A stretch of 64,000 bases of DNA. Origin: Squalus acanthias. Lineage: Eukaryota. Both the position numbers and the translations under genes were made by a program. The notes under the pieces are model-generated. The model saw only the letters and a list, made by a program, of their open reading frames with translations. It ran no database searches and was not told the origin of the DNA. The DNA lies in contig CM059453.1 in assembly GCA_030390025.1 (NCBI GenBank), positions 7,750,001 to 7,814,000 on the forward strand, in the 5' to 3' direction. Each line of letters begins with the position of its first letter. Positions within the stretch are counted from its first letter, which is position 1. Positions 22,972 to 62,241 of the stretch are shown here, in pieces.

Positions 22972-23014
22972 ATGAAGAGTATTAGATTGATCTCCATTCT
23001 GATATTTAGCGAAG
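22972..23014 (+). CDS. Gene B leader exon [14 protein letters not shown](V)
   Basis: ATG, hydrophobic core and phase-1 donor G|GTAAAA; identical in gene C. Confidence 0.82.
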
Positions 23015-26000
23015 GTAAAATATTCATTTTAATAATTAATGTCAGAAGCGAAATCCGTTGTGTGGGAAATTAACACGTTCATTGTTTGTGGAGATAGTAC
23101 ATGTTTAGTTGGTAATTTACAAATTCTCGATTTGCCCATTTAATGTATATTTCATTGGAAACTTTATCTTGTATTTTATAAGATTGATTTAATATTTACT
23201 CTATGATTTATCGACTTTCAATTGAATAACTAATGGAATCTGAATAGTTTTAATGAAACTTTCTCGAGTTTTAATGGATGTAATAATGAATATGTTAGTG
23301 GATGTTTAAAGGTTAAATGAATAGTATTTAACTTGTCGGTCAGGGTATGTTTTAATTTCCATGTTATTGCGGATTTCAGTGGGTGTTTAATTTCTATTTT
23401 TTCACCAGTTGTCCATAGTTCACGATGGTCTGTGAAGGTGCCGTGGAATTTATCGCCGGTGAGCTGGTCATGTGCTGAGATCCCGTGTACATTTGATTAT
23501 CCCGCCTATGGCCGCTGTCCACAGGGTATGTGGTTAAAGTGGGTTCCTAAACCTGGTACCTCAGGGTTGTTGATTATCTGTGATTCCCGGGATTCAGAAA
23601 ATTTGGCCTTGAAATATAGAGGGCGAGCTCAGTTCCCCGGCGACTTTGAAAAGAAACAATGTTCCTTACGGTTAAAGGAGATCAGGAAGATCGATGAAGA
23701 TGATTATTATTTCAAATTGAAGATCATCAATGCCAAGAATAAGAAAGAAGGATATTCTACCGAATCTAAGGTCACTCTTTCTATTTTAGGTAATTTTTTT
23801 TATTTGTTCCTTATGTAGTTTATATTCCATCTCGCCTTGCCATTTAATTTTAGCCTAAAATGGATAGTTATCGTGTTACTCTTGGCCCATGTCACAGGCT
23901 ACAGCGGCAGGACTGCTACATTGAATAATACACAGGTGTGTGTTATGTTTTGACTTGAACTGAAATGGGGCGCTGGCCTTCATAGTAACTTGCAGAATCT
24001 CCTTCTGTTGTTCAGTCAGTAAGTGCAATGCTAGATGGCATTGCCATCGCCGAATCCCCCACCATCAACATCCTGGGGGTCACCATTGACCAGAAACATA
24101 ACTGGGCCAGCCATATAAATACTGTGGCGACAAGAGCAGGTCAGAGGCTAGGTATTCTACGGCGAGTGTCTCAACTCCAGACTCCCCAAATCCTTTCCAC
24201 CATCTACAAGGCACAAGTCAAGAGTGTGATGGAATACTCTCCACTTGCCTGGATGAGTTGCAGCTCCAACAACACTCAAGAAGCTCGACACCATCCAGGA
24301 CAAAGCAGCCGGGTTGATTGGCAGCCCATCCACCACCTTAAACATTCACTCCCTCCACCACTGGCTCACCGTGGCTGCAGTGTGTACCATCTACAAGATG
24401 CACTGCAGCAACTCACGAAGGCTCCTTCGGCAGCTCCTCCCAAACCCGCGACATCTTCCACCTCGAAGGACAAGGGCAGCAGGCGCATGGGAAACACCAC
24501 CACCTCCAAGTTCCCCTCCAAGTCACACACCATCCTGACTTGGAAATATATCGGCCGATCCTTCATCGTCGCTGGGTCAAAATCGTAAAACTCCCTCCCG
24601 AACAGCACTGTGGGAGTACCTTCACCAGATGGACTGCAACGGTTCAAGAAGGTGGCTCTCCACCACCTTCTCAAGGACAATTAGGGAGGGCAATAAATGC
24701 TGGCATTGTCAGCGACGCTCACATTCCATGAATCAATAAAAGTAAAGAACGGTTTGTCAAAATCCATTCCCTGAAGGGTGTGGAAATATAAATCAAGATT
24801 TGTACTTCTAATGGACAGGTCAGAGGACATGGTCAATATTAGGAGGGATTTCTTCAATCTAATCATTTACAGGTCCCCATCTCTTAGGGTCATGTTTCAA
24901 AGACTTTGGGCTAAATCAACTTGCACACCATTGGCCATTTTTTAAATTAAAATCTACGGTCCAGGAGCCAGTGGTGAGTGTAGGGAGGTACTGAGGAGGG
25001 TATCAAGGTCGCAGGAATGTACCGGCAGGCAGGAAGATGGCTTGAAGTGTGTCTACTTCAATGCAAGGAGCAACCGGAATAAGGTAGGAGAACTTGGAGT
25101 GTGGATTAGTACTTGGGACTACGATGTGGTGGCCATTACGGAGACATGGTTAGAACAGGGACAGGAATGGTTGTTGGAAGTTCCGGGGTATAGATGTTTC
25201 AGTAAGAGTAGGGAAGGTGGTAAGAAAGGTGGAGGAGTAGCATTGTTAATCAAGGATAGATTAACAGCGGCAGCAAGGCAGTTCGAGGGGGATCTGCCGT
25301 CTGAGGTAATATGGGCTGAAGTTAGAAATAGGAAAGGAGCGGTCACGTTGTTAGGAGTTTTCTACAGGCTCCCAAATAGTAATAGAGATGTGGAGGAAGA
25401 AATTGCAAAGCAGATTATGAATAGGTGTGGAGGTCACAGAGTAGTTGTCATGGGTGACTTCAACTTTCCAAATATTGATTGGAACCTTTATAGGTCAAAC
25501 AGTTCGGATGGGATAGTTTTTGCACAGTGTGTGCAGGAGGGTTTCCTGACACAATATGTGGATAGGCCGACAAGAGGTGGGGCCACATTGGATTTGGTAC
25601 TGGGTAATGAACCGGGTCAAGTGTTTGATTTGTATGTGGGAGAGCACTTTGGAGATAGCGACCACAATTCGGTGACTTTCACTATTGCAATGGAGAGGGA
25701 TAGGGCCATACGGCAGGGCAGGGTTTATAATTGGGGGAGGGGTAATTATGATGCGATTAGGCAAGAATTAGGGAGCATAAGATGGGAACAGAAACTATCG
25801 GGAAATGCACAAACGAAAAGTGGAGCTTTTTCATGGAGCAATTACTGCGTGTCCTTGATAGGTATGTCCCTGTCAGGCAGGGAGGAAATGGCCGAGTGAG
25901 AGAACCATGGTTCACAAAAGAGGTTGAATGTCTAGTCAAGAGGAAAAAGGAAGCGTATGTAAGGATGAGAAAACAAGGTTCAGTTGGGTCGATTGAGGGT

Positions 26001-29000: not shown

Positions 29001-32000
29001 GCACAACATCGAGGGCCGAAGAGCCTGTACTGTGCTGTACTGTTCTATGTTTATATGTTTTCTATGAATGTCCTTCTCTCCTTACAGATAAACCACGGTT
29101 ATCAGTCTCTGGGGAATTGAATGCAGGAAAGCCAGCACACCTGATCTGTTCATTTACCCACAGTTGCCCATCCGCCAACCTTGAATTGATGTGGACCCAT
29201 GACAATGTTGTACCTCCATTTCTGCCAGAGAATAAAACTTCAAAAGAACATGATAACGCTTTCGAGGGTTTCCAGAAGGTTTCATCCACTTTCAACTTCA
29301 ACCCATCACTGGACGATCATGGGAAGATGTTGGGATGTAAACTTATAGTCGACGGTGTCACAGCTACTGATGAAGAAACTCTTACACTGGATGTTAAATG
29401 TAAGTGCCTGCTCTAAGCTACAGTCAACCAACTTGTTGATGAACCGGTTCAATAGATGTCTGTAAGCTAAATATAGTGATAGCTCGCCTGGATAATTGAA
29501 GTTTCTTGTAAGTCACATTATTTGACATTTGCCCCAGACCCATGGAGTAATATTGGTCACTCCAGTGGTGTGGTTTATATGAAATATAATTGCAAAGGAT
29601 TTCAAGGCCTGATTTTTTTTTCAGCCACAGAGTAACTGAAACATACAGGCCAAGGAGAGTCCATTCATGGTCTGAGCTAACTCAGATACATACATAGGAT
29701 ATACGGCACAGAAACAGGTCATTGGGCCCAACGAGTCCATGCCGGCTTTAATGCTCCACTCGAGCCTCCTCCCTTCTTTCCCCATCTAAATCTATCAGCC
29801 TAACCCACTATTCCCTTCTCCCACATATGCGTGTCCACCCTCCCCTTAACTGCATCTCTACTATTCGCCTCAACGACTCCCTGTGGTAGCGAGTTCCACA
29901 TTCTCACCACTCTCTGGGTAAAGAAGTTTCTTCTGAATTCCCTATTGGATTTCTTGCTGACTATCTTATCTTGATGGCTTGTAGTTATGCTCTTCCCCAC
30001 AAGTGGAAACATTCTCTCTGTATCCGCTCTATGAAAGCCTTTCATAATTTTAAAGACCTCTATTAGGTCACCCCTCAGCCGTCTTTTTTCAAGACAAATG
30101 AGACTCAGCCTGTTCACCCTTTCCTTATATATATACCCCCGCATTTCTGTTATCATCCTTGTAAATCTTCTCTGCCCCCTCTGCAGTGCCTCTACATCTT
30201 TTTTTATAATATGGCGGCCAGTTCTCTAAGTGTGGTCTAACCCAGGTTCGATACAGATTTAGCATAACTTCCATACTTTTCAATTCCATCCTCTCGGAAT
30301 AAACCTTAGTGCTTGGTTTGCTTTAGTTATGGTCTTGCTAACCTGTGGCGCAATTTAGCTGGGGCGTTGGTCAGGATTCTACAATTTACCTCAGCAACCA
30401 TGTATAAGAGATGGGAAAGTCCACCCTACTTATTCTGGGAGGAATGGCCACTTGGTTGATGTACCGGAGGAATAGAACCTTACGCAGGAAAACATACAAC
30501 TCTTCAAATCTTTGAAGATAAGAGGGGAAAGAAGGCTTATTTTTGAAATAAGCTTAAGATCTAGTGCCTAAAAGTCTGGAACTGCATTTTGAATTTATAG
30601 TTTGCAAAATAACCACCATATCTTACTTTAATATTCTTCTTTAGTGATCACATATATTGTTTTATTTTCCGCATCCGCACTGATAACCGCATTTAGATCC
30701 AATGGCCTCATCTCTTCCAGATGGCCCACAAAAACCAGCCATCAATTCCTCTATAGCGGCAGTGGAAGGGAGCTCTTTATTATTATACTGCACGGCCCGG
30801 GGGACCATACCAGGCAAGTTAACTTTGGTCCGAAATGGTGAAGAGATCAGCACGTCTTCCACTGGGGAACTGAAGCAGATATTCCACAACATTAGTTCTG
30901 AAGATAAAGGAGAATATTGGTGCGTGGCTGAAAATAACTTGGGCAAAGCGAACAGCTCCACACTCATTTCTGTACAATGTAAGTGGTGTGTCAACCTATC
31001 AAATGTATATTGGGACATCAATCCGTTTTACAGTGATTAGGCATCGGTGTTTCTCCCCCAGTGTTCATACAACTGTCTTAAAACCCGTCAGTAATATTGC
31101 CTGAAATGTCAGGAAAAGAAGGGTTCTTGAACCAAATTCATTGAGTAAATGACACTTTTAAAAACAAACTGGAGACCCCAAGACACAACTCCAGGTAGAA
31201 TGCATCTCTGATTGGCTAAAACCAACTGAATGAATATGTGAGATGTGCAACTACACATTTTCTGTACGGCGGACTGAACCCAGCGGCCCGGATTCATAGA
31301 ATGATAGAAATTTACAGCACAGAAGGAGGCCATTCGGCCAATCGTGTCCGTGCCGCCGACAAAGAGCTATCCAGCCTAATCCCACTTTCCAGCTCTTGGT
31401 CCGTAGCCTTGTAGGTTTCGGCTTCCAATTGGATATCCAGGTACTTTTTAAATGTGATGAGTGTCTCTGCCTCGAACATCCTTTCAGGCAGTGAGCTCTA
31501 GAACCCCACCACCCTCTAAGTGAAAAAATCTCCTCAAATCCCCTCTCAACCTCCGACCAATTACTTTAAATCTATGCCCTTGGTTATTGACCCTTCTGCT
31601 AAGGGAATTAGATCCTTGCTATCCACTTTATTTAGAGCGCTCATAAGTTTATACACCTCAATCATGTCACCACTCAGCCTCCTCTGTTCCAAAGAATACA
31701 ACCCCAGCCTATCCAATCTTTTCTCATATCTAAAATTCCACAGCCTAGGTAAAATTCTCGTAAATGTCCTCTGCACCCCCTCAAGTGCAATCAGATCCTT
31801 CCTGTAGTGTGGTAACCAGAACTGCATGCAGTATTCTAGCTGCGGCCGAACTAGTGTTTTATACAGTTCAAGCACAACCTCGCTGCTTTTATATTCTATG
31901 CCTCGGCTAATAAAGGCAAGGAACCCGTATGCCTTCTTAACCACCTAATCTACCTGTCCTGCTACCTTCAGGGATCTGTGGACATGCACTCCAAGGTCCG

Positions 32001-35000: not shown

Positions 35001-37559
35001 GAGTATAGGCCCAATCTACTCCATCTCTTCTCATAGGACAACCCTCTCATCACACATGTTGCTCCAGGAAATATATGGATTAATTGACTGCTCATTGGCT
35101 CGATGCAATTTCATACCTGAGTTATTGCCTTGCTAGAAATTAGGGGAAAGGAAAGTCTGATGAAGCATTAAATGAATGCAACATTAACTGGTTCTAATCA
35201 AACTCGTTATGTGCAGTTACCTCTCTGCTTAATCTAAACGCCGAAATTGGTTCTATTTAGACACTGCAAACTGCTGTATGGAAACTATCTCAAGCTGGCT
35301 TCTCTTTTTTCAGATAAACCCACAATAGTATCAGGCCCGACCTGCACCAGCTCTGAGGGTGGGGTTTATTGTACCTGCAGTATCAGAGCCAACCCCCCAG
35401 CAAACATCACCTGGGGCATCAATGGGAGAAACATCACTGCGAACAGTTCAGATATCAATATCCTCTCCTCGGGGTTGAAAAGTCACCTGGTGAAGAGCTC
35501 CCTGACACTGACTCAACCAACTGCAACTGAACGCCTGATCTCATGTTTTGGAGTGAACGAGCATGGCGTTACTGTCGGAAAATACCAGCTCCAATCTGGA
35601 GGTATATATTGCATTTTCCTGTAATTTAATTACTGCGAATGTTTCTGTCCATCACCTGTCAGTGACTAACTCAACGGTGTTAGTGTCAGCATGTTCCAGT
35701 TCCACTGAGCTGAAATATCATTCTTATCTGCAAAGTAGGACTGAATCCAATTTTAATTTCAGTAGTGTTTGGGACTGGTTCATGACTGAGCGCTACCTCA
35801 CTGAAAGTTAGGATGGGAATAATTCATGTAAAGTTTAGAGTCTGGTATCTGAATTTGATTATTGTCGCCTTGTTTTTGTGAAGATAGGAGGGTTAAGATA
35901 AAACACTAGTAGCAGCGTGTGATCTTTCATAAAATAAACCCTTCTGACTTAGTGACACACTCGATGAAATCATGTTTCCTCTCATTGTAACGGTAGTGGG
36001 GTACAGTCGATCAGTTCAACATATTTTCACAGATATTTCAGCCGACTGCCGGTTTTGTTATGCTGACGATATTCTGAAAGAACTATACAGTGCGATAACA
36101 CTGACAATGGAGCCAGGAGAACTTCGATAACTGAAAGAGCCGGTTATAGACTGAATTAACTTATCGGATAGCAAGCGAGCAGATCCGAGTATGCGGCGTG
36201 GATTGATGCAGTCTCTCAGGGAGACTGCGTTATTTAATGGTTTGAAGAAGAGCAGGGGAGTTCTGTCTGGTGCCCTGGCCAATATTTATCCCTAAACCAA
36301 TAACACCGAAACAGTTTTATCTGCTGATTTACTTTATGGCTGTTTCTGGGATCTTGCTGCGCGCAATTTTGCGGCCACGTTCCCTATATTACAACGGTGA
36401 CGACACTTCAAAAGTACTTCATTGGCTGTAAAGCGCTTTAGACGTCGGCAAAAGCGCTATGTAAAAACAAGTTCATTTTGTTCTTAACAGCTTCCCGTAC
36501 ATGCTGTTAAATGTTATGTTGAATCTTGGTATAATCTTAGAGCAATAATGAAGAGCACGATTTTTTTTTATATTTTAGGATCATTTTGGAGAATTGTCAT
36601 GCTAATCAGAGCCGCCGTCGCAGTTCTCATTCTGATTGGCATCATTGTCTTGGTGACGATAGAGATTGATTCACACAGGTATGGTTCATATTACTTATTC
36701 TCGTGCTTTAATAAGACAGATTTCAAAAGGACGTGACATCAGGATTTCAGCCCATGAGCAAATATTGCTTAATGTAATTAACCCCAGATATCATTGACCC
36801 TCAATCTCAGCTAAGAGTTGACAAGGGAATGCTTGCTGGACTTCAAGTGTCTTGTGAGGGGAAAGTAGGGGAATGTCAGAAGTTCAGCATCCCATGTCTG
36901 GTCTTTCACTTCCTAGTTCAAAGATTGTACATCAAGGGCCAGTCCAGAACTTGAGTGCAGAATCTAGTCTCTCACTTGAGTGGAGGCGTCGTATTTCATA
37001 CCAGACAATTTAAGCTGAACACGGTTTGGCAGCTCAAATCTCCCGTGGCCATATTGGCGGAGGACCTCATGACTCAGGAGGTCATAAAATGCTCCACAGC
37101 ACGATTGCTGGACACGAAAGGGCAAATTCCGGTGCATTTTTAAGACTTGGCTGAAATTGCAATGGTTATTCTGCACCAGTAGAATGCTCGCTTACCATCC
37201 ATAAAATGTTCAGTGAACACTGAATTTGTCCAAGCAGATCAAGATAGATTTAACCAGCTTCATCAGATAGAGAGAATGCTTTCTTTGGAATTAGGAAAGT
37301 GTAGAGATAGAAAAGAAACGGGTATTAAATCTGGTCGCAGCCAATCAGGAAACATTAACAAGGACGAGTTACTATAGTGCGCCCCCTGTGGTTCAACACA
37401 GGGACACTGGGTGTTGTATTGAAGCGAATTATCTGTAATTAGGAGACGTGAATCATTTGTATTTTCTGTTTCAGGAAGAAGGTAAATATCCCTGTCGTGG
37501 TCTCTCCCACAGACACGGGTGCAGCGATTTACTGTGGGTTGCAGAACCCACTGAACTGA
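22972..37559 (+). CDS. Gene B: Siglec/MAG-like receptor, putative activating type (L-V-C2-C2-C2-TM[Arg]-short tail), 7 coding exons, 488 aa
   Basis: Exons 22972-23014, 23409-23789, 29088-29399, 30721-30978, 35314-35601, 36579-36678 and 37475-37559 join in frame with GT-AG sites (1467 nt including stop). Confidence 0.82.
23409..23789 (+). CDS. Gene B V-set Siglec-type Ig domain
   Basis: [28 protein letters not shown]...CSL, and F strand YYFK without Cys; AG/GT phase 1-1. Confidence 0.92.
24030..24745 (+). mobile_element. Non-LTR retrotransposon 3' fragment (second CR1/L2-group family)
   Basis: [11 protein letters not shown]...[17 protein letters not shown]; the same insertion is in gene C at ~48060-48770. 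Confidence 0.85.
26849..27997 (+). mobile_element. 5'-truncated Penelope-like element (Zn-finger linker + GIY-YIG endonuclease)
   Basis: Open frame 26851-27573 ...[10 protein letters not shown]...NVVYLIRC...WYIGET...RMNEHR...GLNRD; tatc duplicated on both sides within CR1 ORF2. Confidence 0.92.
27908..27945 (+). ncRNA. Minimal type I hammerhead ribozyme of the Penelope element
   Basis: tcac-CTGAGGA-a-ggagc/gata/gttcc-GAAA-gc-TT-gtga: catalytic core, stems I and II, palindromic AAGCTT in place of stem III. Confidence 0.8.
29088..29399 (+). CDS. Gene B Ig domain 2 (C2-set, with extra Cys in HSCP)
   Basis: DKPRLSV...[11 protein letters not shown]...W...DHGKMLGC...LTLDVK; phase 1-1. Confidence 0.92.
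29690..30356 (-). mobile_element. CR1-like LINE 3' fragment (shared with gene C ~49605-50285)
   Basis: Minus ORF ...[17 protein letters not shown]. Confidence 0.88.
30721..30978 (+). CDS. Gene B Ig domain 3
   Basis: YGPQKP...[13 protein letters not shown]...[15 protein letters not shown]; CAG acceptor, GTAAGT donor. Confidence 0.92.
31293..32330 (-). mobile_element. CR1-like LINE 3' fragment, gene B-specific
   Basis: Minus ORF ...[13 protein letters not shown]...; absent from the gene C intron. Confidence 0.88.
32488..35050 (-). mobile_element. Nested CR1 fragments, including an ORF1 (SGNH esterase) remnant at ~33620-34580
   Basis: [11 protein letters not shown]...[11 protein letters not shown] esterase blocks; the outer fragment is uninterrupted in gene C (~51388-51845). 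Confidence 0.82.
35314..35601 (+). CDS. Gene B membrane-proximal Ig domain (C-x8-C-x-C, MAG domain-5-like)
   Basis: [33 protein letters not shown]...SSLTL...SCFGVNEHG; phase 1-1. Confidence 0.9.
36240..36480 (+). mobile_element. DeuSINE/SacSINE1-like 3' fragment
   Basis: Similar to the reverse complement of 165-400. Confidence 0.65.
36579..36678 (+). CDS. Gene B transmembrane exon with Arg ([34 protein letters not shown])
   Basis: TAG acceptor, AG|GTATGG phase-2 donor; Arg codon at 36608-36610. Confidence 0.88.
37475..37559 (+). CDS. Gene B cytoplasmic exon ending in stop ([27 protein letters not shown])
   Basis: CAG acceptor; TGA at 37557-37559, one base before a GTAAGT donor; homologous to 3629-3716 and 60641-60728. 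Confidence 0.75.
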
Positions 37560-39455: not shown

Positions 39456-39623
39456 AGCCAAGACCAGGATCGAAATATTGCTATCAGATGATCTACATCC
39501 AACAATCAGCGCAAAGTGTAGAGGGTCTGCACGCAATCGGTGAATTTTTGAAGTCTTCAAAAACATAAAAGATATCTCCAGAATGAGTAGTCCAGTGAAT
39601 ACACCGCGATTAATTTTAAATCA
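39456..39623 (+). pseudogene. Decayed ITIM exon of gene B (probably now 3' UTR)
   Basis: Aligns to 5016-5183 but has several stops and indels; ITIM Tyr is His (ctg cac gca); acceptor intact. Confidence 0.8.
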
Positions 39624-44932: not shown

Positions 44933-45150
44933 AAAGCCAAGCTGTGACCTGGGTCTGAAAACACATCCCTAAACTAGTCAGTAAAGCCAAGCTGAGACCT
45001 GGGTCTGAACACACATCCCTAAACTAGTCAGTAAAGCCAAGCTGAGACCTGGGTCTGAACACACATCCCTAAACTAGTCAGTAAAGCCAAGCTGAGACCT
45101 GGGTCTTAACATACACCCCTAAACTAGTCAGTCAAACCAAACTGGGCCCG
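44933..45150. repeat. 50-bp minisatellite, 4 near-perfect units plus degenerate flanking units (~44665-45350)
   Basis: aaagccaagctgagacctgggtctgaacacacatccctaaactagtcagt starting at 44933, 44983, 45033 and 45083. Confidence 0.92.
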
Positions 45151-46999: not shown

Positions 47000-47042
47000 A
47001 TGAAGAGTATTAGATTGATCTCCATTCTGATATTTAGCGAAG
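47000..47042 (+). CDS. Gene C leader exon
   Basis: [14 protein letters not shown], phase 1. Confidence 0.82.
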
Positions 47043-50000
47043 GTAAAATATTCATTTTATTAATTAATGACAGAAGCGATTTTCATTGTGTGGGAAATCA
47101 ACACGTTCATTGTTTGTGGAGATAGTACATGTTTAGTTGGTAATTTACAAATTCCCGATTTACCCATTTAATGTATATTTCATTGGAAACTTTATCTTGT
47201 TTTTTATAAGATTGATTTAATATTTACTCTTTGATTTATCGACTTTCAATTGAATAACTAATGGCATCTGTAAAGTTTTAATGAAACTTTCACCAGTTTT
47301 AATGGATGTAATAATGAATATGTTAGTGGATGTTTAAAGGTTAAATGAATAGTATTTAACTTGACGGTCAAGGTATGTTTTAATTGCGATATTATTGCGG
47401 ATTTCAATGGGTGTTTAATTTCTGTTTTTTCACCAGTTGTCCATAGTTCACGATGGTCTGTGAAGGTGCCGTGGAATGTGTCGGCGGTGAGCGGGTCATG
47501 TGCTGAGATCCCGTGTACATTTGATTATCCCGCCTATGGCCGCAGTCCACGGGGGACGTGGTTAAAGGGGGGTCCTGATCCTGGAACCTCAGGGTTGTTG
47601 ATTATCTGTGATTCCCGGAATTCAGACAAAGTGCCCTTGAACTATAGAGGGCGAGCTCAGTTCACTGGCGACTTTGAAAAGAAACAATGTTCCTTCCGGT
47701 TAAAGGACATCAGGAAGATCGATGAAGGTGTTTATTATTTCATATTGAAGATCATCACCGCCCAGAATACTACAGGAGAATATTCTAACGAAACTAAGGT
47801 CACTCTTTCTATTTTAGGTAAGTTTTTTCATTTGTTCCTTTTGTAGTTTATATTCCATCTCCCCAGTGCCATTTAATTTTTAGCCTAAAATGGATAGTTG
47901 TCGTGTTACTCTTGGCCCATAGCACAGGCTGCAGCGGCAGGACTGGTCCATTGTGTAATACACAGGTGTGTGTTATGTTTTGACTTTAACTGAAATAAGG
48001 CGCTGCCCTTCTTAGTAACTTACAGAAGCACCCTCTGTTGATCAGTCAGTAAGTGCAATGCTAGATGATATTGCCATCGAAGTATCCCCCAACCATCAAC
48101 ATCCTGGGGGTCACCATTGACCAGAAACATAATTGGGCCAGCCATATAAATAATGTGGCGACAAGAGCAGGTCAGAGGCTAGGTATTCTGCGGCGAGTGT
48201 CTCAACTCTGACTCGGCAAATCCTTTCCACCATCAACAAGGCACAAGTAAGGAGTGTGATGGAATACCCTCCACTTGCCTGGATGAGTGCAGCTCCAACA
48301 ACACTCAAGAAGCTTGACACCATCCAGGACAAAACAGCCCGCTTGATTGGCACCCCATCCACCACCTTAAACATTCACTCCCTCCACCACCGGCGTACCG
48401 TGGCTGCAGTGTGCACCATCTACAAGATGCACTGCAGCAACTCGCCAAGGCTTATTCGGCAGCACCTCCCAAACCCGCAACCTCTACCATCTAGAAGGAC
48501 AAGGGCAGCAGGCGCATGGGAACACCACCACTTCCAAGTTCCCCTCCAAGTCACACACCATCCTGACTTAGAAATATATCGCCGAACTTTCATCGTCGCT
48601 GGGTCAAAATCATAGATCTCCCTCCCGAACAGCACTATGGGAGTACCATCAGCACACGGAATGCAGCGGTTCAAGAAGGTGGCTCACCACCACCTTCTCA
48701 AGGGCAATTAGGGATGGGCAATAAATGCTGGCCTTGTCAGCGACGCTCACATTCCATGAATCAATAAAAGTAAAGTGTGTCAAAATCCAATCCCTCAAGG
48801 ATGTGGAAAAATAAATCAAGATTTGTACTTCTAATGGACAGGTCAGAGGACATGGTCAATACTTAGGAGGGATTTCTTCCATCAGATCATTTACAGGCCC
48901 CCATATCATAGGGTCATTTTGCAAAGTCTTTCGGCTCAATCAACTTGCACACCACTGGCCATTTTGAAAATAAAATCTACGGTAACGCGAATGTCCTTCT
49001 CTCCTTTCAGATAAACCATGGACATCAGTCTCGGAGGAATTCATTGCAGGAAAGCCAGCACACCTGACCTGCTCAGTCACCCATAGTTGCCCGTCCGCCA
49101 ACCTTGAATTGATATGGACCCACGACAATGTTGTACCTCCATTTCTGCCAGAGATTAAAACTTCACAAGTACATGATAACGCTTTCGAGGGTTCCCAGAA
49201 GGTTTCATCCACTTTCAGCTTCAGCCCATCACTGGAACATCATGGGAAGAAGCTGGGATGTAAATTTAAAGTCGACGGTGTCACAGCTACTGTTGAAGAA
49301 ACTCTTATACTGGATGTTAAATGTAAGTGCCTGCTCTAAGCTACAGTCTACCAACTTGTTGATGAACCGGTTCTATAGATGTCTGTATGCTAAATATAGT
49401 GATAGCTCGCCTGGATAATCGAAGCTTCTTTTAAGTCACATTATTTTAATTTGCCTCAGACCCATGGAGTAAATTGGTCACTCCAGGGGTGTGGTTTATA
49501 TGAAATATCATTGCAAAGGCTTCCAATGCCTGATTTTTTGCAGCCACAGAGTAACTGAAACATACAGGCCAAGGAGAGTCCATTCATGGTCTGAGCTAAC
49601 TCACATACATACATCGGACATACGGCATAGAAACAGGTCATTGGGATCAAACAGTCCATGCCGGCTTTAATGCTCCACTCGAGCCTCCTCCCGTCTTTCC
49701 TCATCTAAATCTATCAGCCTAACCCGCTGTTCCCTTCTCCCTCATATGCTTGTTCAGCCTCACCTTAAATGCATCTCTACTATTCGCTTCAACCACTCCC
49801 TGTGGTAGCGAGTTCCACATTCTAATCATCTCTGGGTAAAGAAGTTTCTTCTGAATTCCCTATTGGATTTCTTGCTGACTATCTTATATTGATGGCTTGT
49901 AGTTATGCTCCTCCCCACAAGTGGAAACATTCTCTCTGTATCCGCTCTTTGAAAGCCTTTCATGATTTTAAAGACCTCTGTTTGTTTATCCCACAGCCTT

Positions 50001-53000
50001 CTTTTTTCAAGACAAAATAGACCCAGCCTGTTCATCCTTTCCTGATATGTATACCCCCGCATTTCTGATATCATTGTTGTAAATCTTCTCTGCACCCTCC
50101 CCAGTGCCTCTATATCCTTTTTATAATACGGCGACCAGAACTGTACGCAGTTCTCTAAGTCTTGTGTAACCAAGGTTCGATACAGATTTAGCATATATCC
50201 CTACTTATCAATTCTATCCGTCTCGGAATAAACCCTAGTGCTTGGTTTGCTTTCGATATAAACTTGCTGACCTGTGGCGCAATTTAAATGGGGCGGTAGT
50301 CAGGATTCTACAATTTCCCTCAGCAACCATGTGTGAGAGATGGGAAAGTCCACCCTACTTGTTCTGGGAAAAATGGGCACTTGGTTGATGTACCGGAGGA
50401 ATAGAACCTTACGCGGGAAAACATACAACTCTTCAAATCCTTGATGATAAGAGGGGAAAGAATGCTTATTTTTGAAAGAAGCTTAAGATCTAGTGCCTAA
50501 AAGTCATGAACTGCATTTTGAATTTATAGTTTACAAGAAAACCACCATAGCTTACTTTAATATTCTTCTTTAGTTGTCACATATATTGTTTATTTTCCTC
50601 ATCCACACTGACAACCACATTTAGAACCAATGGCATCATCCCTTCCATATGGCCCACAAAAACCAGCCATCAATTCCTCTATAGCGGCAGTGGAAGGGAG
50701 CTCTTCGTTATTATGCTGCACGGCCCGGGGGACCATACCGGGCAACTTAACGTTGTTCCGAAATGGTGAAGAGATCAGCAGGTCTTCCACCGGTGAACTG
50801 AATTATATAATTCGATAAATTAGTTCTGAAAATAATGGTGAATATTGGTGCGTGGCTGACAATAACTTGGGCAAAGCGAACAGCTCCACACAGATTTATG
50901 TACAATGTAAGTGCTGGGTAAACCTTTCAAATGTATATTGGGACATCAACCCTTCTGACAGTGATTAGGAATCGGTGTTTTCCCCCAGTGCTCATACAAC
51001 TGTCTCAAAATCCGTCAGTAATATTGCTAGAAAAGACAGTAAAAGAAGTAGAGTTGAACCAAATTCATTGAGTAAAATACACTTTTAAAAACCAACTGAG
51101 ACCCCGATACACAACTCCAGGTAGAATGTATCTCTGATTTGCTAAAACCAACTGAATGAATATGTGGGATGTGCAAAGGCAACATTTCTGTACGGCGGAC
51201 TGAACCCAGCGGCACTGAATTGTAGAAACATTTTAGTCCGTCACAAAGGTAGACATTTATAGCATTAAATAAAGACACAAACTGAACAGAAGTTATTGAG
51301 GTGTTTACCAGAATTCACATGTTGGAGGAGTTAGCCGGGTTTATTTACAAGATTGTAACTTGCGAATCCACACAACATAAGACTATAGGAACATAGGAAT
51401 TCGCATCAGGTGTTGGCAATTCGGCTCCTCGAGTCTGCTCCGCCATTCAATGAGATCATGGCTGATCTTCGACCAAAACTCCACTTTCCGTCCTATCTCC
51501 ATATCCCTTGATTCCCCAAGAGTCCGGAACTCTATCTATCTCATCGTTGAATATGCTCAATGACTCATCATCCACAACCCTTTGGTGTAGAGAATTTGAA
51601 GATTCAAAACCCTCTGAGTGAAGAAATTCCTCCTTATCTCAGTCTCAAATGGCCGTCCCCTTATCCTGAAACGATGCCCCCTAGTTTTAAGCTCTCCGGA
51701 CAGGGGAAACAATCTTTCAGCATCTACCCTGTCAATCCCCCTCAGAATATCATGTTTCCATGAGTTCATCTCTCATTCTTCTAAACTCCAGCCAGCATAG
51801 GCCTAATCTACTCAATCTCACCTCAAAGGACAGCCATCTGATCACACATGTTATCCCAGGAAATATATGGATCAATTGACTGCTTGATGCAATGTTGTAC
51901 CTGATTAATTGCCTTGCTAGAAACTAGGGAAAGGACGTCTGATTAAGCATTAAATGAAAGTAACATTGAATGGTTCTAATCAAACTCGTTATGTGCAGTG
52001 ACCTCTCTTCTTAATCTAAACGCCGAATTTGGATCTATTTGGACAATGCAAACTGCTGCATGGAAACTATCTCAATTTGACTTCACTTACCTTTTAGATA
52101 AACCCACAATAGTATCAGGCCCGACCTGCATCAGTTCTGAGAGTGGGATTCATTGTACCTGCAGTGTCAGAGCCAACCCCCCAGCAAACATCACCTGGGG
52201 CATCAATGGGAGAAACATCACTGCGAACAGTTCAGATATCAATATCCCCTCCTCGGAGTTGAATAGTCATCTGGTGCAGAGCTCCCTCACACTGACTCAC
52301 CCAAATGGAACTGGACACCTGATCTGTTTTGGAGTAAACGAGCATGGCATTACTGTCGGAAAATACCAGCTCCAATCTGAAGGTATATATTACATTTTGT
52401 TGTAAAATAAGTACTGCGGACGGCTTGGTCCATCACCTGTCAGTGACTAACTGAACGGTGTTAATGTCAGCAAATAACAGTTCCATTCGATATCTGCATG
52501 CCAAATCCAATGGCAATTTAAGGCTGAATTCATGGATATTTTAAGTAGTGTATGGTCTGGCCAACAACTCATTGAATGTTGCGATGGGAATAATGAATGC
52601 ATTTTTAAATGTGTCTCTCATTTCTGGGTTTGTTTATTTTCGAATTAGGAGCAGGAGTAGGCCACACGGCCCCTCGAGCCTGTTCTGCCATTCATTAAAA
52701 TGATGGCAGTTCTGATTACTCCACATTCCCTGCTAACCCCGATAGCCTTTCACCCCCTTGCTAATCAATAATCTATCTACCACTGCCTTAAAAATATTCA
52801 AAGACTCTGCTTCCACCGCCCTCTGAGGAAGAGTTCCAAAGACTCACGACCCTCTCTGAGAAAAACATTCTCCTCATCTCAGTCTTAAATGGGCGTCCCC
52901 TTATTTTTAAACAGTGACCCCTAGTTCTGGATTCTCCCACAAGAGGGAACATCCTCTCCACATCCACCCTGTCAAGACTCCTCAGGATTTTATTTGTTTC

Positions 53001-56000: not shown

Positions 56001-59000
56001 AGGGTGGTAGAGGCAGGAACCCTCACAACATTCAAGAAGCATTTAGATGAGCACTTGAAACGCCATAGTATACAAGGCTAAGGGCCAAGTGCTGGAAAAT
56101 GGGATTAGAATAGGCAGGGCTTGATGGCCGGCGCGGACACGATGGGCCGAAGGGCCTCTTTCCGTGCTGTATAACTCTATGACTTTATGACTATGACTCT
56201 ATATAGGACAGCAATCATAAGACAATTAGTTCAAATTTACACAGGGGACAAAACCATTGCTGAAATGCAGTGTCAGTCTGTGGAAGGAAAAATCATTTCA
56301 AATGATGCCCTCTCTGTGTTCAGTGAACATTGCCCATTAAATGAATAAAATATAACAAGGATTTGCAGGGAGATTAGATGTGGGGTCATTTCCAAGTCAT
56401 CCATCTTATGATTGCCGGTTCAGAGTCCTGTCTGTTTAGGAATAGATAGAAATACTGAACTCTTACGTTTAAGTAGAGAATTTCTAGAAAACGTGCCTGC
56501 ACAAACTGATAAAAGTTATCCTAAAACCATGATGTAATCTTCGAGCAATAATAAACAGCAAAGTCTTTTTGAATATTTTAGGAACATTTCCCGGGGAAAT
56601 TGTCATCCCAGTACTAGCAGCCGCCGGAGTTATACTGCTGATCCTGATCGTGGTGATGGTGCGCAGGTATGTGTGGTTCATAATTACTTAAACTATTGTG
56701 TCAATCACAGATTTGATAGGGGCCATGACATCAGGATATCTGCCTGTGAGAAACTATTGTTTCAAATAATTAACCCATGAGAGTATTGACCCTGAAACTC
56801 AGCTAAGATTTGTAAAGGGGGGTATTCGAGAGGTCAAGTGCTTCTGTGCCGCAAGTAGGGAAGTGTTAAAGGCTCATCTGCCCCTGGTCGCTCTATGGCC
56901 AGTCTATCGCTGGTCTATCGCCGGCCTATCGCTTCTCCCAGCACCAGTAACACCAGAATAATGGTTGTCTAGCCTTTGCCCCGTAGCTTAAGCTTCCATG
57001 TCCAACGCTTTTGCGTTCAAGTATCAAAACAAAACATGAGCACCACATCTAGTCCGACATTGTGGTGGAGTGCGGCATTGTTGGAGATGCCGTCTTTCAT
57101 ACCAGACATTAAATCAGAAACACCATCTGCCTGCTCAAGTGGATATGAAAGATCCCATGATAATATTGGTTGGAGAGCAGTGAAGTTCTCCCTGTGTCAC
57201 GGCAAACATATATCCCCCAATCACTCCAGAAAAGATGCTTAACTCTTCATTTGGTTTATTGTTGTTTATGGGATATTGCTGTGCTCAAAATGGCTTCCAT
57301 GTTTGTCTATAAAACTAGATTCAAGTAATAATTAATTGGCTGTGGAATGCTTTGGGAAGATCCTGAGGTAAAGGCACTATATAATTGAAAGTTTATTATC
57401 CTGGATTTGTCCTTTAACAGCCAACCAACAACTTGCATTCCTATAACATCTTGTAGGAACAGGTGCAAGGGCTTCACAAGGGAGCATAACTCGAACACGA
57501 ATTTAAACAAGCTGATGTAATGAACAGTGATTAAAGTCTTGGTCAGAGACTTGGGGTTTAAGGTGGGTGTAAATGGAGAAGATGGATGTGGAGTCGCGGT
57601 GGAGTCCAAGGAGATGTTTCCAGAGTGTGTGGGCTGAGTGATGGAAGTCACGGCCGCCAATGGAGGGTGATCATAAGAAGCAAAAAGAGGCTGGAATTAC
57701 AACATCGGAGATTTGGAACCGGTGCCGATTGTTGTAGGACCAGAGGCCGTTACAGAGGCAGTGTGGGGGCCATTGATAGTTTTATAAAAATATTAATCTC
57801 TTCAATGGTAAGAAAGTAAAGAAATAAAGGCTTGCATTTAAATAGCGCCTTTTACTACCTCAGCACGTCTCAAAGCGCTTTATAGCCAATGAAGTCATTT
57901 TGAAGTGTAGTCACTGTTGTAATGTAGGAAACGCGGCCGTCAATCCGCGCACAGCAAGCTCCCACAAACAGCAATGTGATAATGACCAGATAATCTGTTG
58001 ATTGAGGGATAAATATTGGACAAACCACTCCCGTAGAACTCCCCTGCTCTTCCTCGAAATAGTGCCATTGGATCTTTTACGTCTGCCCGAGAAAGCATAT
58101 GTAACCTCGGTCGAAAGTCTCATTCGAAAGACGGCACATCCGACAGTGCAGCGCTCCCTCAGTACTGCAGTGGAGGGTCAGCCTGGATTATAGCGCTCAA
58201 TTCCCTGGAGTGGGACTTTGAACCCACAAACTACTTCACTGAGAGGCGAGAGTGCTATCCACTGATCCACGGCTGAAAAGCTACCAGCGGGTAGCTGTTA
58301 GCAGGAACTCAGTATATGTTTATGTTAGTTGTTAGGGTTTAATAGAAAAACAGCGGTATTTGGAGAAACGTGTTATTCTTATCTTTCACTCTTTCTTCTG
58401 AAGCTGTTTAGTTTCACTATGTTTCTTCCAAGGATACTGTCAGAATTTCTTAATTGAAGAAAGGTAGGTTGTTGAATACCATCAACAAAGTAACTGGAAG
58501 CAAGTGAATTTAAATAAATCGACAATTAAAAAGAAGCAGCTAATTTAAATATATGTTAAATAATCACAGAAGATGTTTGTGTTTGGAAAGCCAGATTAGG
58601 GAATTGTTGAGGTTCAGTGGGACCTGGGTGTCCTTGTACACGGATCAATTAAAGTTAACATGCAGGTATAGCAAGCAAATGGTATGTTGATCTTTATTAC
58701 AAGAGGATTTGAGTATAAGATAAAAGACGTATTACAGCAAATATATCGGGCCCTGGTGAGACCACACGTGGAGTATTTTGTACAGTTTTGTAATCCTTAC
58801 CTAAGGAAGGATATACTTGCCATGGAGGGAGTGCAACGAAGGTTCACCAGACTGGTTCCTGGGTTGGGGGGATTGTCCAATGAGGAGAGATTGAGTAGAC
58901 TAGGTCAATATTCTCTAGAGTTCAGAAGAATGAGAGTTGATCACTTTGAAACATAGAAAATTCTTACAGGGCTTGACAGGGTAGATGCAGAGAGGTTGTT

Positions 59001-62000
59001 TGCCCTGGCTGGGGAGTCTAGAACCAGGGGTCACAATCTCAGAATAAGAGGTCGGCCATTTAGGACTGAGATGAGGAGAAATTTCTTCACTCAGAGGGTG
59101 ATGAATCTTTGGAATTCTGTACCCCACAGGGCTAGGGAGGCTCAGTCGTTGAATATATTTAAGACAGAGATCGATAGATTTTTTGGATACTAAGGGAATC
59201 AAGGGATATGGGGATAGTGCATGAAAGTGGAGATGAGTTAGAAGATCAGCCATGATCTTATTGAATGGCGGAGCAGGCTCGAGGGGCCGAAAGGCCGACT
59301 CCTGCTCCTATTTCTTATGTTCTTATGTTCTCTTTCCTCAGGCCCATGCCTGATAACAACCTCAGACTGGGCAGCAAGTGTATCTCAGTGAAGTCCAACA
59401 GTCCTGTTTGAGTGAAGCTGGTTTTATAACTGCAATTTTCCATAACAGAATCAGAAAAAAACAATAACAAGCTAAATTTGAAGACAAATTGATTCGTTTT
59501 AGTCACAGGAATAAGAAAACAGAATCCATCTTTTCAAACTGATTCAAAAAGGAAATTCCTTTCTCTCGCAGTTGATAACTCCAATGGACTGGAATTAGAC
59601 TATTTAATATGAGGAATGAATGTGTTACCGCACTTTCACAAAGTCCTGTCTGTAATTATAAAATTTAGGTCGGATTTTGCATTAAACCCTTCCGTCTGCT
59701 TTTTAGACAGTTTTTCAAGACAATGTGTGCAAATCGTGTCTGTTGAACAAGGCGTGAAACACTTGTCTGCTACTTAATAGGCTGTTAAGACAATGTGTGA
59801 AACTCATGCATGCCGTTCACGCACAGTCTTAACAACCAACAAAACTCCCCCGTCTGATACTTACTCGGTGTGCACGTACTTTACGAAACTACTCTATTTG
59901 CTCTTTAAACAGTATTAACTTAATGTGCGTAATTCCTGATATGTTTAACTTCGCATTTCTGGTATCATCCTTGCAGATCTCCTCTGGACCCTCTCCAGTG
60001 CCTCTATATTCTTTTTATAATATTTTGCCCAGAACTGTACGCAATACTCCAAGTGTTGTCTAACCAAGGTTCGATACAGATTTAGCATAACTTCCCTACT
60101 TTTCAATTATATACCTCTAGAAATAAACCCTAGTGCTTGGTTTGCATTTGTAATGGGCTTGGTAAACTATGGCGCAACTTTCAGTGATTTGTGTATTTGT
60201 AATCCGAGATCCCTTTGTTCCTCCACCCCACATAGACTCGCACCCTCCAATTGATAAAGTGACCTCCCTATTCGTCCTACCAAAATGTAATACCTCACAT
60301 TTATCTGTGTTGAACTTCATTTGCCAAATATTTGCCCATTCTGCGATTTTATTAATGTCCTCCTCTAATTTGTTGCAGTCCTCCTCAGTATTTACTATCC
60401 CACCAATTTGGTATCATCCTCAACTTTAGAAGTTGTTTGTGATTCTAAAATCCAAATCGTTAATATAAATTGTGAGCAGTCTTGGTCCCAGCACTGATCC
60501 TTGTGGAACACCACTACCCACCTTCTGCCACTGTGAATGTAGTATGCAGCCGTGGTTCAAAACACGAGCACTGTACGATTTATTGAATTTAATTTTAATC
60601 GCTTGTGAGATGTGCCTTATTTTTAATTTTTAACACTCAGGAGGAAGACAAGAGGTACCACTGGTGTCCTCTTAACCAACAACGATTCGGTGAGTTACTT
60701 TGTGCTGTAGACCCCGTTTAACACGGAGGTAAGTGAGTGCATGGCAACTGCCCAACATTCGATGGAGTTACCCCTGTCTGATATTGGCACTGTTTGTAAC
60801 CACAGTGAGTAACATTAACCATGCAGTTCAACGGGTCAACAGGTGTTCTGGAAAATTGTTTGACTGAGTTTTTAAGGGGTGGAATGAACATCTTACACTA
60901 CTAACAGAAAGTGATGTGCTGGTCATGTCCTGGTCAATGCATCGTGCATTTTCTCTGTAGTGGATTTCTATTGAATTCAAAGTGGGTCTAAGGGTATCGA
61001 TTGACCGTGTCACGACATATATTAATCAGAGTAATATTTACACTCACATCACCCATGGCAGTACATCCGGTGCTTTAAATTATCTACAAGATCACATAGT
61101 AAGAGGGGTTTGAGAGGGTGAAATAGAATGGTATTTCTCTGGGATTATCTACATTGTCCTAACTGGTTTTTATGGCGCTATTTTACCGCGGGGCGGCAAC
61201 AATCCGTGCGCGGGTCCTGGGTGAGCAATAGGCTCGCATGGGACAGGTTTTAAATCCGTGGTCTTAATTTAATGTCCAGCCCCGACTCCCACCCGAACCC
61301 GACTGCAATCATTGGCTATAATAAAGCTGAAAATGCAGGAAATAATCAGCAAGTCGGCAGCATCTGTGGAGAGAGAAACAGATGTAAAGTTTCAGGTCGA
61401 TGACCTTTCATCAGAACTGGAAAAAAGTTGAAGATGTAACCGGTTTTAAGTAAGGCAGATAAAGGGGGGAGGAGAGGAAACGATAAAAGTGAAGGTCTGT
61501 GATAGGGTGGACGGCAGGAGAGCTTAAATGAAAAAAAGAGATGAAGGTGCGAGGCAAAAGGAGATAGTAATGGGACAAGTAAATGAACATAAGTTGGGCC
61601 AAGAGAAGGTGTAAATGGCAACAGCAGAACCATTGCCAAAAACTGCTGTCCGAAACAATGGGGGCAGTGGTGATGATCTGAAATTGTTATACTCGGTGTT
61701 GTGTCCAGAAGGCTGTAAAGTGCCTATTCGAAAGATGAGGTGCTGCTCCTCGAGTTTCCATTGAGTTTCATTGGAACAGTGTATGAGGCTGAGGACAGAA
61801 AGTTCAGGGTGGGAGTGGAGCAGAGAATTATACTCAGGCTCTCCCCCACAACTGCCCCCAGCAGTCGGGTAATGTTGAGCAGTGGGGAATACTATTGGCG
61901 CGGCGTTACTCAGGGCCAGGAGACGCCCAATGTTTCCTTTTAGGGACAGAAGGAGCTCAATAGGACAATTAGAACGGTGGCAGAGATGGAATAAAGCGGG

Positions 62001-62241
62001 TTATTCTGGTACAGGAAGCGCACTGTCACCCGGTTCAGTATCTCCACATCTAATACACTACTTTCTGTTATAGAGACAAGACATGTATGGAGACACTGAT
62101 GTGAAAGGGGCTACATCAAACCGGTCAGCTCAAAGTGAAGAGGTCCTGTATGCCGCCGTCAGTTTTTCAAAAGTTCACAAGATAGAGCAATATCTCCAGA
62201 ACGAGGAGACAAGTGAATACGCCGCAATTAAATTTAAATGA
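47000..62241 (+). CDS. Gene C: Siglec/MAG-like inhibitory receptor (L-V-C2-C2-TM-ITIM/ITIM-like), 440 aa if the dead D3 exon is skipped
   Basis: Exons 47000-47042, 47437-47817, 49011-49322, 52098-52382, 56582-56666, 60641-60689 and 62074-62241 join in frame (1323 nt including stop). Confidence 0.8.
47437..47817 (+). CDS. Gene C V-set Siglec-type Ig domain
   Basis: [13 protein letters not shown]...YRGRAQFTGD...CSF...DEGVYYFI. Confidence 0.92.
48060..48770 (+). mobile_element. Second-family LINE 3' fragment
   Basis: Equivalent to 24030-24745. Confidence 0.85.
49011..49322 (+). CDS. Gene C Ig domain 2
   Basis: DKPWTSV...LTCSVTHSCPS...HHGKKLGC...LILDVK; intact splice sites. Confidence 0.92.
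49605..50285 (-). mobile_element. CR1-like LINE 3' fragment
   Basis: Minus ORF 49826-50194. Confidence 0.88.
50649..50906 (+). pseudogene. Gene C inactivated Ig domain 3 pseudo-exon
   Basis: Acceptor CAG changed to CAT (50646-50648) and in-frame TAA at 50816-50818; otherwise aligns to 30721-30978. Confidence 0.88.
51388..51845 (-). mobile_element. CR1/HER1-like 3' fragment
   Basis: Minus ORF ...[18 protein letters not shown]. Confidence 0.85.
52098..52382 (+). CDS. Gene C membrane-proximal Ig domain
   Basis: [33 protein letters not shown]...; 285 nt, phase 1-1. Confidence 0.9.
52643..54620. mobile_element. Cluster of CR1 3' fragments in both orientations
   Basis: Tails and ORF ends at ~52643-53000(-), 53186-53865(+, with an inverted tail inside) and 54250-54620(-). 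Confidence 0.78.
54715..56200 (+). mobile_element. CR1 LINE RT-3' fragment
   Basis: [24 protein letters not shown] motifs; (atgact)n tail. Confidence 0.92.
56582..56666 (+). CDS. Gene C transmembrane exon, uncharged (GTFPGEIVIPVLAAAGVILLILIVVMVRR)
   Basis: TAG acceptor ending 56581, AG|GTATGT phase-2 donor; flanks homologous to those of the gene B TM exon. Confidence 0.88.
60641..60689 (+). CDS. Gene C cytoplasmic exon 1; alternative donor after 60728
   Basis: (R)RKTRGTTGVLLTNNDS|GTGAGT. Confidence 0.75.
61315..61832 (-). mobile_element. Penelope-like 3' fragment with degenerate hammerhead (61379-61419)
   Basis: Paralogue of 4312-4775; minus strand reads cagttCTGATGAaaggtcatcgacctGAAActttacatctg. 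Confidence 0.78.
62074..62241 (+). CDS. Gene C terminal exon with ITIM (VLYAAV) and ITIM-like motif (SEYAAI)
   Basis: RQDMYGDTDVKGATSNRSAQSEEVLYAAVSFSKVHKIEQYLQNEETSEYAAIKFK*. Confidence 0.88.
   Translation, partial: RQDMYGDTDVKGATSNRSAQSEEVLYAAVSFSKVHKIEQYLQNEETSEYAAIKFK

Follow-up and report, generated by a model that had tools for sequence, protein, structure and literature searches.

We describe here a pair of adjacent receptor genes in a 64,000-nucleotide stretch of the genome of the shark Squalus acanthias (NCBI GenBank assembly GCA_030390025.1, contig CM059453.1, positions 7,750,001 to 7,814,000 of the forward strand), referred to below as the window. The genes, B (22972-39623) and C (47000-62241), are intact multi-exon immunoglobulin (Ig) receptor genes of the sialic acid-binding Ig-like lectin (Siglec) family; they lie on the same strand with their starts 24 kb apart, and the interval that they occupy runs from B's ATG at 22972 to the last base of C's TGA at 62241. 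We consider it likely that C is an inhibitory receptor, that B is its activating counterpart, and that the ectodomains of the two have been homogenised. The architecture and the family assignment we hold with high confidence; that B is expressed and activating appears, judged from its sequence, somewhat more probable than the opposite. A paired architecture had been put forward in a preliminary description of this DNA, and its elements are all present: similar ectodomains, tyrosine-based inhibitory motifs of the immunoreceptor type (ITIMs) in C, and a transmembrane Arg in B.

The mechanism that we propose is as follows. C, together with its near-copy A at the start of the window, would be a type I membrane protein, C being composed of a leader, a V-set domain, two working C2-type Ig domains and an uncharged transmembrane segment. 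The tyrosines of the C and A tails, which lie in two ITIM-consensus motifs, would be phosphorylated after ligand binding and would recruit SHP-type phosphatases, dampening the cell. B would present nearly the same ectodomain with one additional Ig domain, followed by a transmembrane segment whose Arg sits some six residues inward of the outer face, and by a short tail lacking a canonical ITIM. This Arg would pair with an acidic residue of an adaptor dimer bearing a tyrosine-based activation motif of the immunoreceptor type (ITAM), such that the same or a similar ligand would elicit an activating signal through B. A basic residue in the outer third of a transmembrane helix, in a protein without an ITIM, is the usual mark of adaptor-coupled receptors.

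Architecture and family of genes B and C

Seven B exons are open with canonical splice sites (Table 1). All exon borders in B and C are AG/GT with the sole exception of the acceptor of C's third Ig-domain exon (D3), the reading frames connect, the Ig exons are of phase 1-1, and the transmembrane exons of both genes end in phase 2. Because D3 is dead in C, the domain order of C is V-D2-D4 and that of B is V-D2-D3-D4. When the window was searched with seven shark proteins by tblastn, every exon of B, C and A was matched and no other place was; chance origin of the gene models is excluded.

The signalling ends of the genes are of two kinds. The transmembrane segment of C is without charge (TFPGEIVIPVLAAAGVILLILIVVMVR), and the tails of A and C end in SEEVLYAAV(S/N)FSKVHK.EQYLQNEETSEYAAI.FK and the stop, with SEYAAI 17 residues beyond VLYAAV and three residues ahead of the stop. 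This fits the CD33-related pattern, in which an ITIM close to the membrane is followed by a distal ITIM-like motif near the C-terminal end. The preliminary description had assigned both C and A an uncharged transmembrane segment and the two tail motifs; we find the segment of C and the motifs of both genes at the expected places, the claim for A's segment concerning DNA outside the window. Only the last two exons of A are inside the window, and the homology offset puts its transmembrane exon about 1 kb before base 1; the last exons of A and C differ at 11 of 168 nucleotides and at five of 56 codons (55 amino acids and the shared stop). The tail of B, by comparison, has no match to the canonical ITIM pattern [SIVL]xYxx[ILV]. 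Its transmembrane Arg, short tail and decayed ITIM exon, all noted earlier, are present as described, and the relic exon is 73.5% identical to the last exon of C. There is no AATAAA or ATTAAA within 840 bases after B's stop, and several such signals lie past the relic exon, the first AATAAA being at 40034; the relic (39456-39623) is therefore probably now part of the 3' untranslated region. An acceptor further upstream for B's transmembrane exon was considered and rejected, as an immediate stop results.

The first cytoplasmic exon of A and C carries two strong donors, the first of which has the sequence G|GTGAGT. In C, use of donor 1 (after 60689) keeps the frame into the ITIM exon, and continuing past it towards donor 2 yields VSYFV(V/L) and then TAG in A and C (VSYFVL in C). 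Donor 1 falls within the codon run that in other sharks' proteins encodes DSVTYAAV, a third membrane-proximal ITIM. An ITIM-consensus motif remains in A and C with either donor.

By homology, B and C are members of the Siglec family. When the B V-set exon is compared with PDB sequences (phmmer), its 14 best matches are all Siglecs, led by sialoadhesin at 4e-13 and followed by Siglec-10, -8, -5, -15, MAG and CD33, with the first non-Siglec at 8e-4, and the 18 best matches of the C V-set exon are likewise all Siglecs. The D2 exons have their best PDB matches in domain 2 of Siglec-5, MAG, CD22 and CD33, and Pfam reports V-set and Ig_CD22, the latter at 23.2 and 26.5 bits, just below the cut-off of 27. 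An AlphaFold model of B's V exon (20-row alignment, mean predicted local distance difference test score 83.6) compared with the PDB by Foldseek has the sialoadhesin V-set as its best match (E 8e-11, TM 0.81/0.87), with MAG next. The placement of the V domains within the Siglec family, on which the preliminary description depended, thus agrees with both the top sequence matches and the fold.

The Siglec cysteine pattern was also found as previously stated. In the V domains of B and C it consists of SCAEIPC (C-x4-C), an E-strand Cys in KKQC and a Phe in place of the F-strand Cys (YYF), and the extra Cys of D2 (HSC, within HSCP) aligns with GSC in domain 2 of Siglec-5. The three V-domain Cys columns are retained in 21, 24 and 23 of 24 aligned rows, and the disulfides are predicted. 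We note that B and C share a further Cys in IICDS (V codon 57; 23579-23581 and 47607-47609), in a column where none of the 22 other aligned rows has Cys (18 Tyr, two Ser, one Asn and one Phe), and that B alone has another in GRCPQ (codon 36, 23516-23518). These extra cysteines could be unpaired, or in B could form a new C-C' disulfide.

A profile made from the B and C V exons and searched against 1.84 billion representative proteins gave 583 matches at E<=1e-3 and seven at E<=1e-30, these seven being six elasmobranch RefSeq models and one multi-V teleost protein, in support of the cartilaginous-fish host that the preliminary description had thought probable. The elasmobranch relatives, which come from at least 13 species, are automatic RefSeq predictions with names such as 'Siglec-5/8/12/13/14', 'MAG-like', 'sialoadhesin-like' and 'CD33-like'; the closest V domain is that of Heptranchias perlo P0171 ('sialic acid-binding Ig-like lectin 5 isoform X2'), with an identity of 65% to that of C and of 59% to that of B. 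In an unrooted V-domain tree of 34 rows and 128 columns, B and C are inside a 21-row elasmobranch clade (97/97) and outside the tetrapod CD33-related clade, which is separate (100/99) and contains Rhinopithecus Siglec-12 and three tetrapod relatives. The MAG, sialoadhesin and CD22-like rows around the elasmobranch clade are unsettled and the deep branches lack resolution, so that the tree gives no orthology of B or C to sialoadhesin, MAG or CD22. Orthology with mammalian Siglec-5/8/12/13/14, as the RefSeq names suggest, has no support in the tree and was rejected; because the tree sets the elasmobranch clade apart, these names reflect best hits and not orthology. The separation of the two clades also supports the earlier proposal that the system is independent of the mammalian pairs. 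With regard to P0171 itself, the RefSeq isoform omits the transmembrane exon and translates the last one in a different frame (residues ~405-491), and the same alternative frame is open over the last exons of A and C bar one or two stops; the isoform may be a soluble form or a modelling artefact.

Transmembrane exon types and ectodomain likeness

The similarity between B and C is greatest in their front parts. From upstream of the leader through D4 the two are 85.5-91.4% identical in DNA, introns included, and identity is 72% around the transmembrane exon, 54% in cytoplasmic exon 1 and 73.5% in the last exon. Among inner codons, 97 of 126 are identical in V (77% at the amino acid level), 82 of 103 in D2 (80%), 70 of 85 in D3 and 78 of 95 in D4 (82%), and only 11 of 33 aligned columns are identical in the transmembrane segment. 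The leaders are identical, and hand counts of 98/127 for V and 83/104 for D2 in the preliminary description are these same figures with the split codon added.

The transmembrane exon of B has counterparts in two other sharks. B, Cetorhinus maximus P0025 ('Siglec 13') and Mustelus asterias P0056 ('MAG-like') share the column of the Arg, lack one codon after the initial F and carry six extra codons at the end, which closes with (N/D)SH. Nine aligned ITIM-type transmembrane sequences, including that of C, start with TFPW and have a short end, and none of the nine has the Arg-type features. Consistent with this grouping, P0025 and P0056 match B's transmembrane exon at 6e-6 and 7e-6 in tblastn, and the ITIM-type proteins match C's at 2e-3 to 3e-3. 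A pattern scan found the Arg-type motif in two of 194 proteins, a word search for further Arg-type proteins with residues 336-425 of P0025 returned only P0025 among 13 candidates, and B's transmembrane exon has no match in the PDB. Judged by this distribution, both kinds of transmembrane exon are old, and two further sharks have the Arg type as well. The Arg itself does not vary among the three Arg-type sequences, and the residues next to it do; the tails of the three proteins are unrelated, that of Cetorhinus having no Tyr.

The V domains, on the other hand, cluster by species and not by transmembrane type. Those of B and C pair with each other (97/91 in a first tree and 100/99 in the 34-row tree), as do those of the ITIM-type P0005 ('Siglec 14') and the Arg-type P0056 of Mustelus (100/99 and then 100/98), the two proteins being 77% identical over 371 amino acids. 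In Cetorhinus, the Arg-type P0025 pairs with P0027 (100/100; 96.5% identical over 227 amino acids), a partial protein model that does not cover the signalling end and is taken as the contig neighbour of P0025. Clustering within species is thus seen in all three species tested, and combined with the shared Arg-type transmembrane exon it is what marks paired receptors that conversion keeps alike. The pattern itself is seen directly in the trees; that the ectodomain halves are kept alike within each species by conversion or unequal crossing-over is what we infer from it.

Table 1. Exons of genes A, B and C in the window (all positions are window coordinates).
Gene	Feature	Position	Strand	Remarks
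A	Cytoplasmic exon 1	3629..3716	+	Copy of the C exon; donors after 3677 (donor 1) and 3716 (donor 2)
A	Last exon	5016..5183	+	VLYAAV 5085-5102, SEYAAI 5154-5171
B	Leader exon	22972..23014	+	Phase 1 donor GTAAA; identical in C
B	V-set exon	23409..23789	+	Cysteines in the Siglec pattern; Lys (codon 23714-23716) in place of the canonical Arg
B	D2 (C2-set) exon	29088..29399	+	Extra Cys in HSCP, 29159-29170
B	D3 Ig exon	30721..30978	+	Intact, conserved
B	D4 Ig exon	35314..35601	+	
B	Transmembrane exon	36579..36678	+	Arg; ends ...IDSH; phase 2 end; type also in Cetorhinus P0025 and Mustelus P0056
B	Cytoplasmic exon	37475..37560	+	Stop TGA 37557-37559, one base before GTAAGT donor; without canonical ITIM
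B	Relic of ITIM exon	39456..39623	+	Acceptor retained; 4 stops in phase 0
C	Leader exon	47000..47042	+	
C	V-set exon	47437..47817	+	Ile at canonical Arg position
C	D2 exon	49011..49322	+	HSCP at 49082-49093
C	D3 exon, dead	50649..50906	+	Acceptor AG>AT, in-frame TAA
C	D4 exon	52098..52382	+	One codon shorter than B's
C	Transmembrane exon, uncharged	56582..56666	+	Phase 2 end
C	Cytoplasmic exon 1	60641..60689 (donor 1) or 60728 (donor 2)	+	
C	Last exon	62074..62241	+	VLYAAV 62143-62160, SEYAAI 62212-62229, stop TGA 62239-62241

Gene integrity and alternative explanations

Between B and C, 8.7% of the exon bases and 9.7% of the aligned non-coding bases are different. Frameshift-length indels number 27 in 4910 aligned non-coding bases and none in 1279 exon bases, where 7.0 would be expected (P=9e-4) and a single in-frame indel is present, and both genes have therefore been kept open. 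The dN/dS ratios between B and C are 1.60 for V, 0.93 for D2, 1.27 for D4 and 0.58 for D3, although the counts are small and none is significant alone. Relative to P0171, the D3 of B has one lineage-specific change and the dead D3 exon of C has eight. By these measures the frames are protected in both genes and the amino acids change fast, fastest in the V domain of B, a combination which suggests that diversifying or relaxed selection on a working receptor is a better fit than a plain pseudogene.

Several observations weigh against a reading of B as the expressed, activating partner of C. The Arg-type transmembrane segments of the two other sharks are only 15/32 and 12/32 identical to that of B, in a comparison of three Arg-type sequences of about 30 residues, and the tail of B retains a Tyr in AIYCGL, which is a YxxL. 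In the available part of a 2014 survey of shark genomes, no homologue of FcR-gamma was found (PMC4016189). A long interspersed nuclear element (LINE) lies in the intron between V and D2 of B. The dN/dS values close to one fit relaxed constraint as well as diversifying selection, and in V, D2 and D4 together B has 27 lineage-specific changes relative to P0171 and C has 11 (p=0.014); four other outgroups show the same trend, which is significant with one of them (and not significant with three of the five outgroups overall). Three sequencing runs from the same species, presumed to be RNA and used as contigs (each 0.04-0.05 of the sampled words), were compared with 35200-39700, and their contigs, whose kind is guessed and which cannot show absence, cover none of B's D4, transmembrane and cytoplasmic exons. 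Lastly, the canonical strand-F sialic-acid Arg is missing in both B and C.

In the same comparison, the interspersed repeats at 36106-36558 and 38522-39125 are covered in all three runs by thousands of contigs with summed depths of 10^4-10^5. A 238-nucleotide contig of run X3 (depth 4.4) matches 39454-39550, starting from the acceptor of the relic exon, with five of 97 letters different, and its first 141 letters match nothing in 35200-39700. Such a contig could come from a spliced transcript or from a paralogous locus.

FRFE of sialoadhesin, which includes Arg97, corresponds to FKLK of B and to FILK of C in the alignments. Arg occupies this column in eight of 19 elasmobranch homologues, P0171 among them, and in all three outgroups, and the other 11 homologues have I, S, T, K, A or L; loss of the Arg is therefore common in the clade and derived in B and C. 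Glycan binding by B and C is doubtful on this evidence, and because both V domains lack the canonical Arg their ligand is probably not bound in the classical Siglec way, through the Arg-carboxylate contact.

There are three alternatives to consider, of which the first is that B and C are not functionally paired. Their likeness would then be a product of exon duplication and reshuffling in the cluster, with the two receptors perhaps expressed in different cells and recognising different ligands. The differences at 29 of 126 V positions, including the canonical Arg position (Lys in B and Ile in C), and in the number of domains are consistent with such unrelated roles. However, Mustelus also has one gene of the Arg type and one of the ITIM type, whose ectodomains resemble each other more than they resemble those of other species, and this recurrence points to something maintained rather than accidental; in Cetorhinus the Arg-type P0025 pairs with P0027, a partial model that does not cover the signalling end. 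We regard the absence of pairing as rather unlikely.

A second alternative is that B is functional without being activating, serving as an ITIM-less ligand decoy, as an endocytic receptor acting through its YxxL, or in association with a non-ITAM partner, with the Arg contributing to assembly or retention. The AIYCGL motif, the unrelated tails of the three Arg-type proteins with no Tyr in that of Cetorhinus, and the 2014 report of no FcR-gamma in sharks, as far as the available part of that source extends (PMC4016189), are all compatible with this. What stands against it is the position of the basic residue, in the outer third of the membrane segment of an ITIM-less protein where adaptor coupling is the usual explanation, and the invariance of the Arg in three of three sequences while its neighbours vary. 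We consider this improbable.

The third alternative supposes that B started as an inhibitory gene, lost the ITIMs and is now drifting, dying or dead, in which case the pair consists of one working receptor and a relic. The decayed ITIM exon, the dN/dS of 1.60 in V, the excess of lineage-specific changes in B, the LINE in its intron and the lack of run contigs on its 3' coding exons can all be accommodated in this way, as can two features of B's V domain, a Gly to Trp change before the first Cys and the extra Cys. There is also a precedent in that SIGLEC16, an activating partner, is often a pseudogene in primates, according to the part of PMC5701461 available. The seven open exons with canonical splice sites and the lack of frameshift indels where 7.0 are expected weigh against this, however, and D3 is far better kept in B than in C, with one change as compared to eight. 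Moreover, B's transmembrane exon is a distinct type common to two other sharks and not a mutated version of C's. A dying or dead B therefore seems to us a poor prospect. The simplest form of this idea, B as a plain pseudogene, is rejected given the absence of frameshift indels in its exons, its conserved D3 and its distinct Arg-type transmembrane exon.

Genomic setting and related receptor systems

The window is repeat-rich vertebrate DNA without runs of N, and Rfam and tRNA scans found no RNA genes in it. Comparison of the window with itself shows that 1-6939 recurs at 57659-64000 with 92-95% identity, joining the tail of gene A to that of gene C, and that 21398-35704 recurs at 45853-52485 with 85-91% identity, joining the front halves of genes B and C. 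As the tail of A and the DNA downstream of it recur behind C at 92-95%, the tandem unit is about 57 kb and contains one B-type and one C-type gene. It is probable that the stretch is a single repeat unit in a tandem cluster of Siglec-family receptor genes belonging to an elasmobranch-specific branch.

The LINE mentioned above is in sense orientation, is about 4 kb long (24946-28975) and fills the V-D2 intron of B; the corresponding intron of C has none. It encodes an endonuclease (Exo_endo_phos, 3.5e-22) and a reverse transcriptase in two parts (RVT_1, 3e-17 and 1.9e-14), which are separated at about 27011-27946 by an insert with a weak match to GIY-YIG (4.5e-4, below the cut-off) that is perhaps Penelope-like. 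Of the two interspersed repeats downstream of D4, at 36106-36558 and 38522-39125, the second is a member of a family of which the window contains over ten copies.

Pairs of Siglecs have so far been known from primates. B and C resemble the primate Siglec-5/14 and Siglec-11/16 pairs in being adjacent Siglec-family genes, one with an ITIM and an ITIM-like motif and the other with a basic transmembrane residue and a short tail. The homogenisation of ectodomain exons within each species, with V domains clustering by species and not by type, is a further likeness (reported for Siglec-11/16 in the part of PMC5701461 available), as are indications that the converted exons evolve fast or under relaxed constraint (PMC5701461 and PMC4042635, each as far as available). 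There are also clear differences: B and C belong to an elasmobranch clade (97/97) apart from the CD33-related-type clade, their V domains are only 77% identical and not nearly identical, both lack the canonical Arg, and the activating-type transmembrane exon of B is conserved across three shark species.

In their V-set domains, B and C are most like sialoadhesin (Siglec-1) and MAG (Siglec-4), which provide the best sequence and fold matches and have the same cysteine pattern and an N-terminal Trp. Sialoadhesin, however, is a protein of 17 Ig domains that is not known to carry a signalling motif, and its Arg97 is replaced by Lys in B and Ile in C. The elasmobranch RefSeq models share with B and C the leader, the domain order, the tail motifs (SEEVLYAAV ... 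SEYAAIKWK) and the same two transmembrane types, but differ in that their V domains are only 40-65% identical to those of B and C and that eight of 19 retain the canonical Arg. Most elasmobranch ITIM forms also have the third membrane-proximal ITIM (VTYAAV), which in A and C is cut by the new donor or by a stop.

A different comparison is with the receptor pairs of the leukocyte receptor complex (LRC) type, such as KIR, LILR and PIR, which are coupled to FcR-gamma or DAP12 and in which an ITIM form and a transmembrane-Arg form with similar ectodomains lie in a tandem cluster. The LIRxAV-like context of B's Arg presumably resembles that of FcR-gamma-coupled receptors. The Ig domains of the LRC-type receptors are nonetheless unrelated to those of B and C and are C2-only, and the available part of the 2014 survey reports neither FcRL nor C2-only LRC homologues in shark genomes (PMC4016189).

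The pairing seems to be undescribed in cartilaginous fish. No description of shark Siglec pairs was found in a literature search that covered the best-ranked titles in which Siglec and shark co-occur. According to the available part of PMC7226832, fish regularly have only Siglec-1, CD22, MAG and Siglec-15 and lack the inhibitory CD33-related Siglecs, and that part of the text mentions neither sharks nor cartilaginous fish. In a 2019 review of cartilaginous-fish immunity there is, in the portion available, no occurrence of ITIM, Siglec or inhibitory receptor (PMC6795676), and the Siglec families are listed among those gained in jawed vertebrates in the accessible part of PMC8455134. The preliminary description had raised the possibility of novelty, and this stands only in part: we found no paper on the pairing, but the genes exist as predictions. 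Since RefSeq already holds automatically predicted gene models of this family for at least 13 species of elasmobranchs, what is new is the reading of the genes and not the genes themselves.

Pathogens that exploit inhibitory receptors have repeatedly been met by the pairing of such receptors with activating ones. If the present reading holds, with an expanded cluster of paired Siglec-family receptors and a conserved Arg-type transmembrane exon, the logic of paired receptors would have been reinvented in the oldest living jawed-vertebrate lineage, and an undiscovered shark ITAM adaptor would be indicated. Because some of its V domains have the canonical Arg and others do not, the family would also form a natural series in which the loss or re-use of a Siglec lectin site could be studied. 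More tentatively, and at some distance from what we regard as likely, sharks and rays may run an innate 'missing-self / pathogen-decoy' signalling system on a large and fast-evolving cluster of paired Siglec-family receptors, independent of the mammalian CD33-related Siglecs, KIR and LILR, with an Arg-type exon at least as old as the common ancestor with Cetorhinus and Mustelus and with many members having given up the canonical Arg, so that the family has moved from glycan to protein or pathogen ligands. Were this so, the published picture of fish with just four conserved Siglecs would no longer stand, and cartilaginous fish would gain a functional counterpart of the leukocyte receptor complex, which is reportedly missing there.

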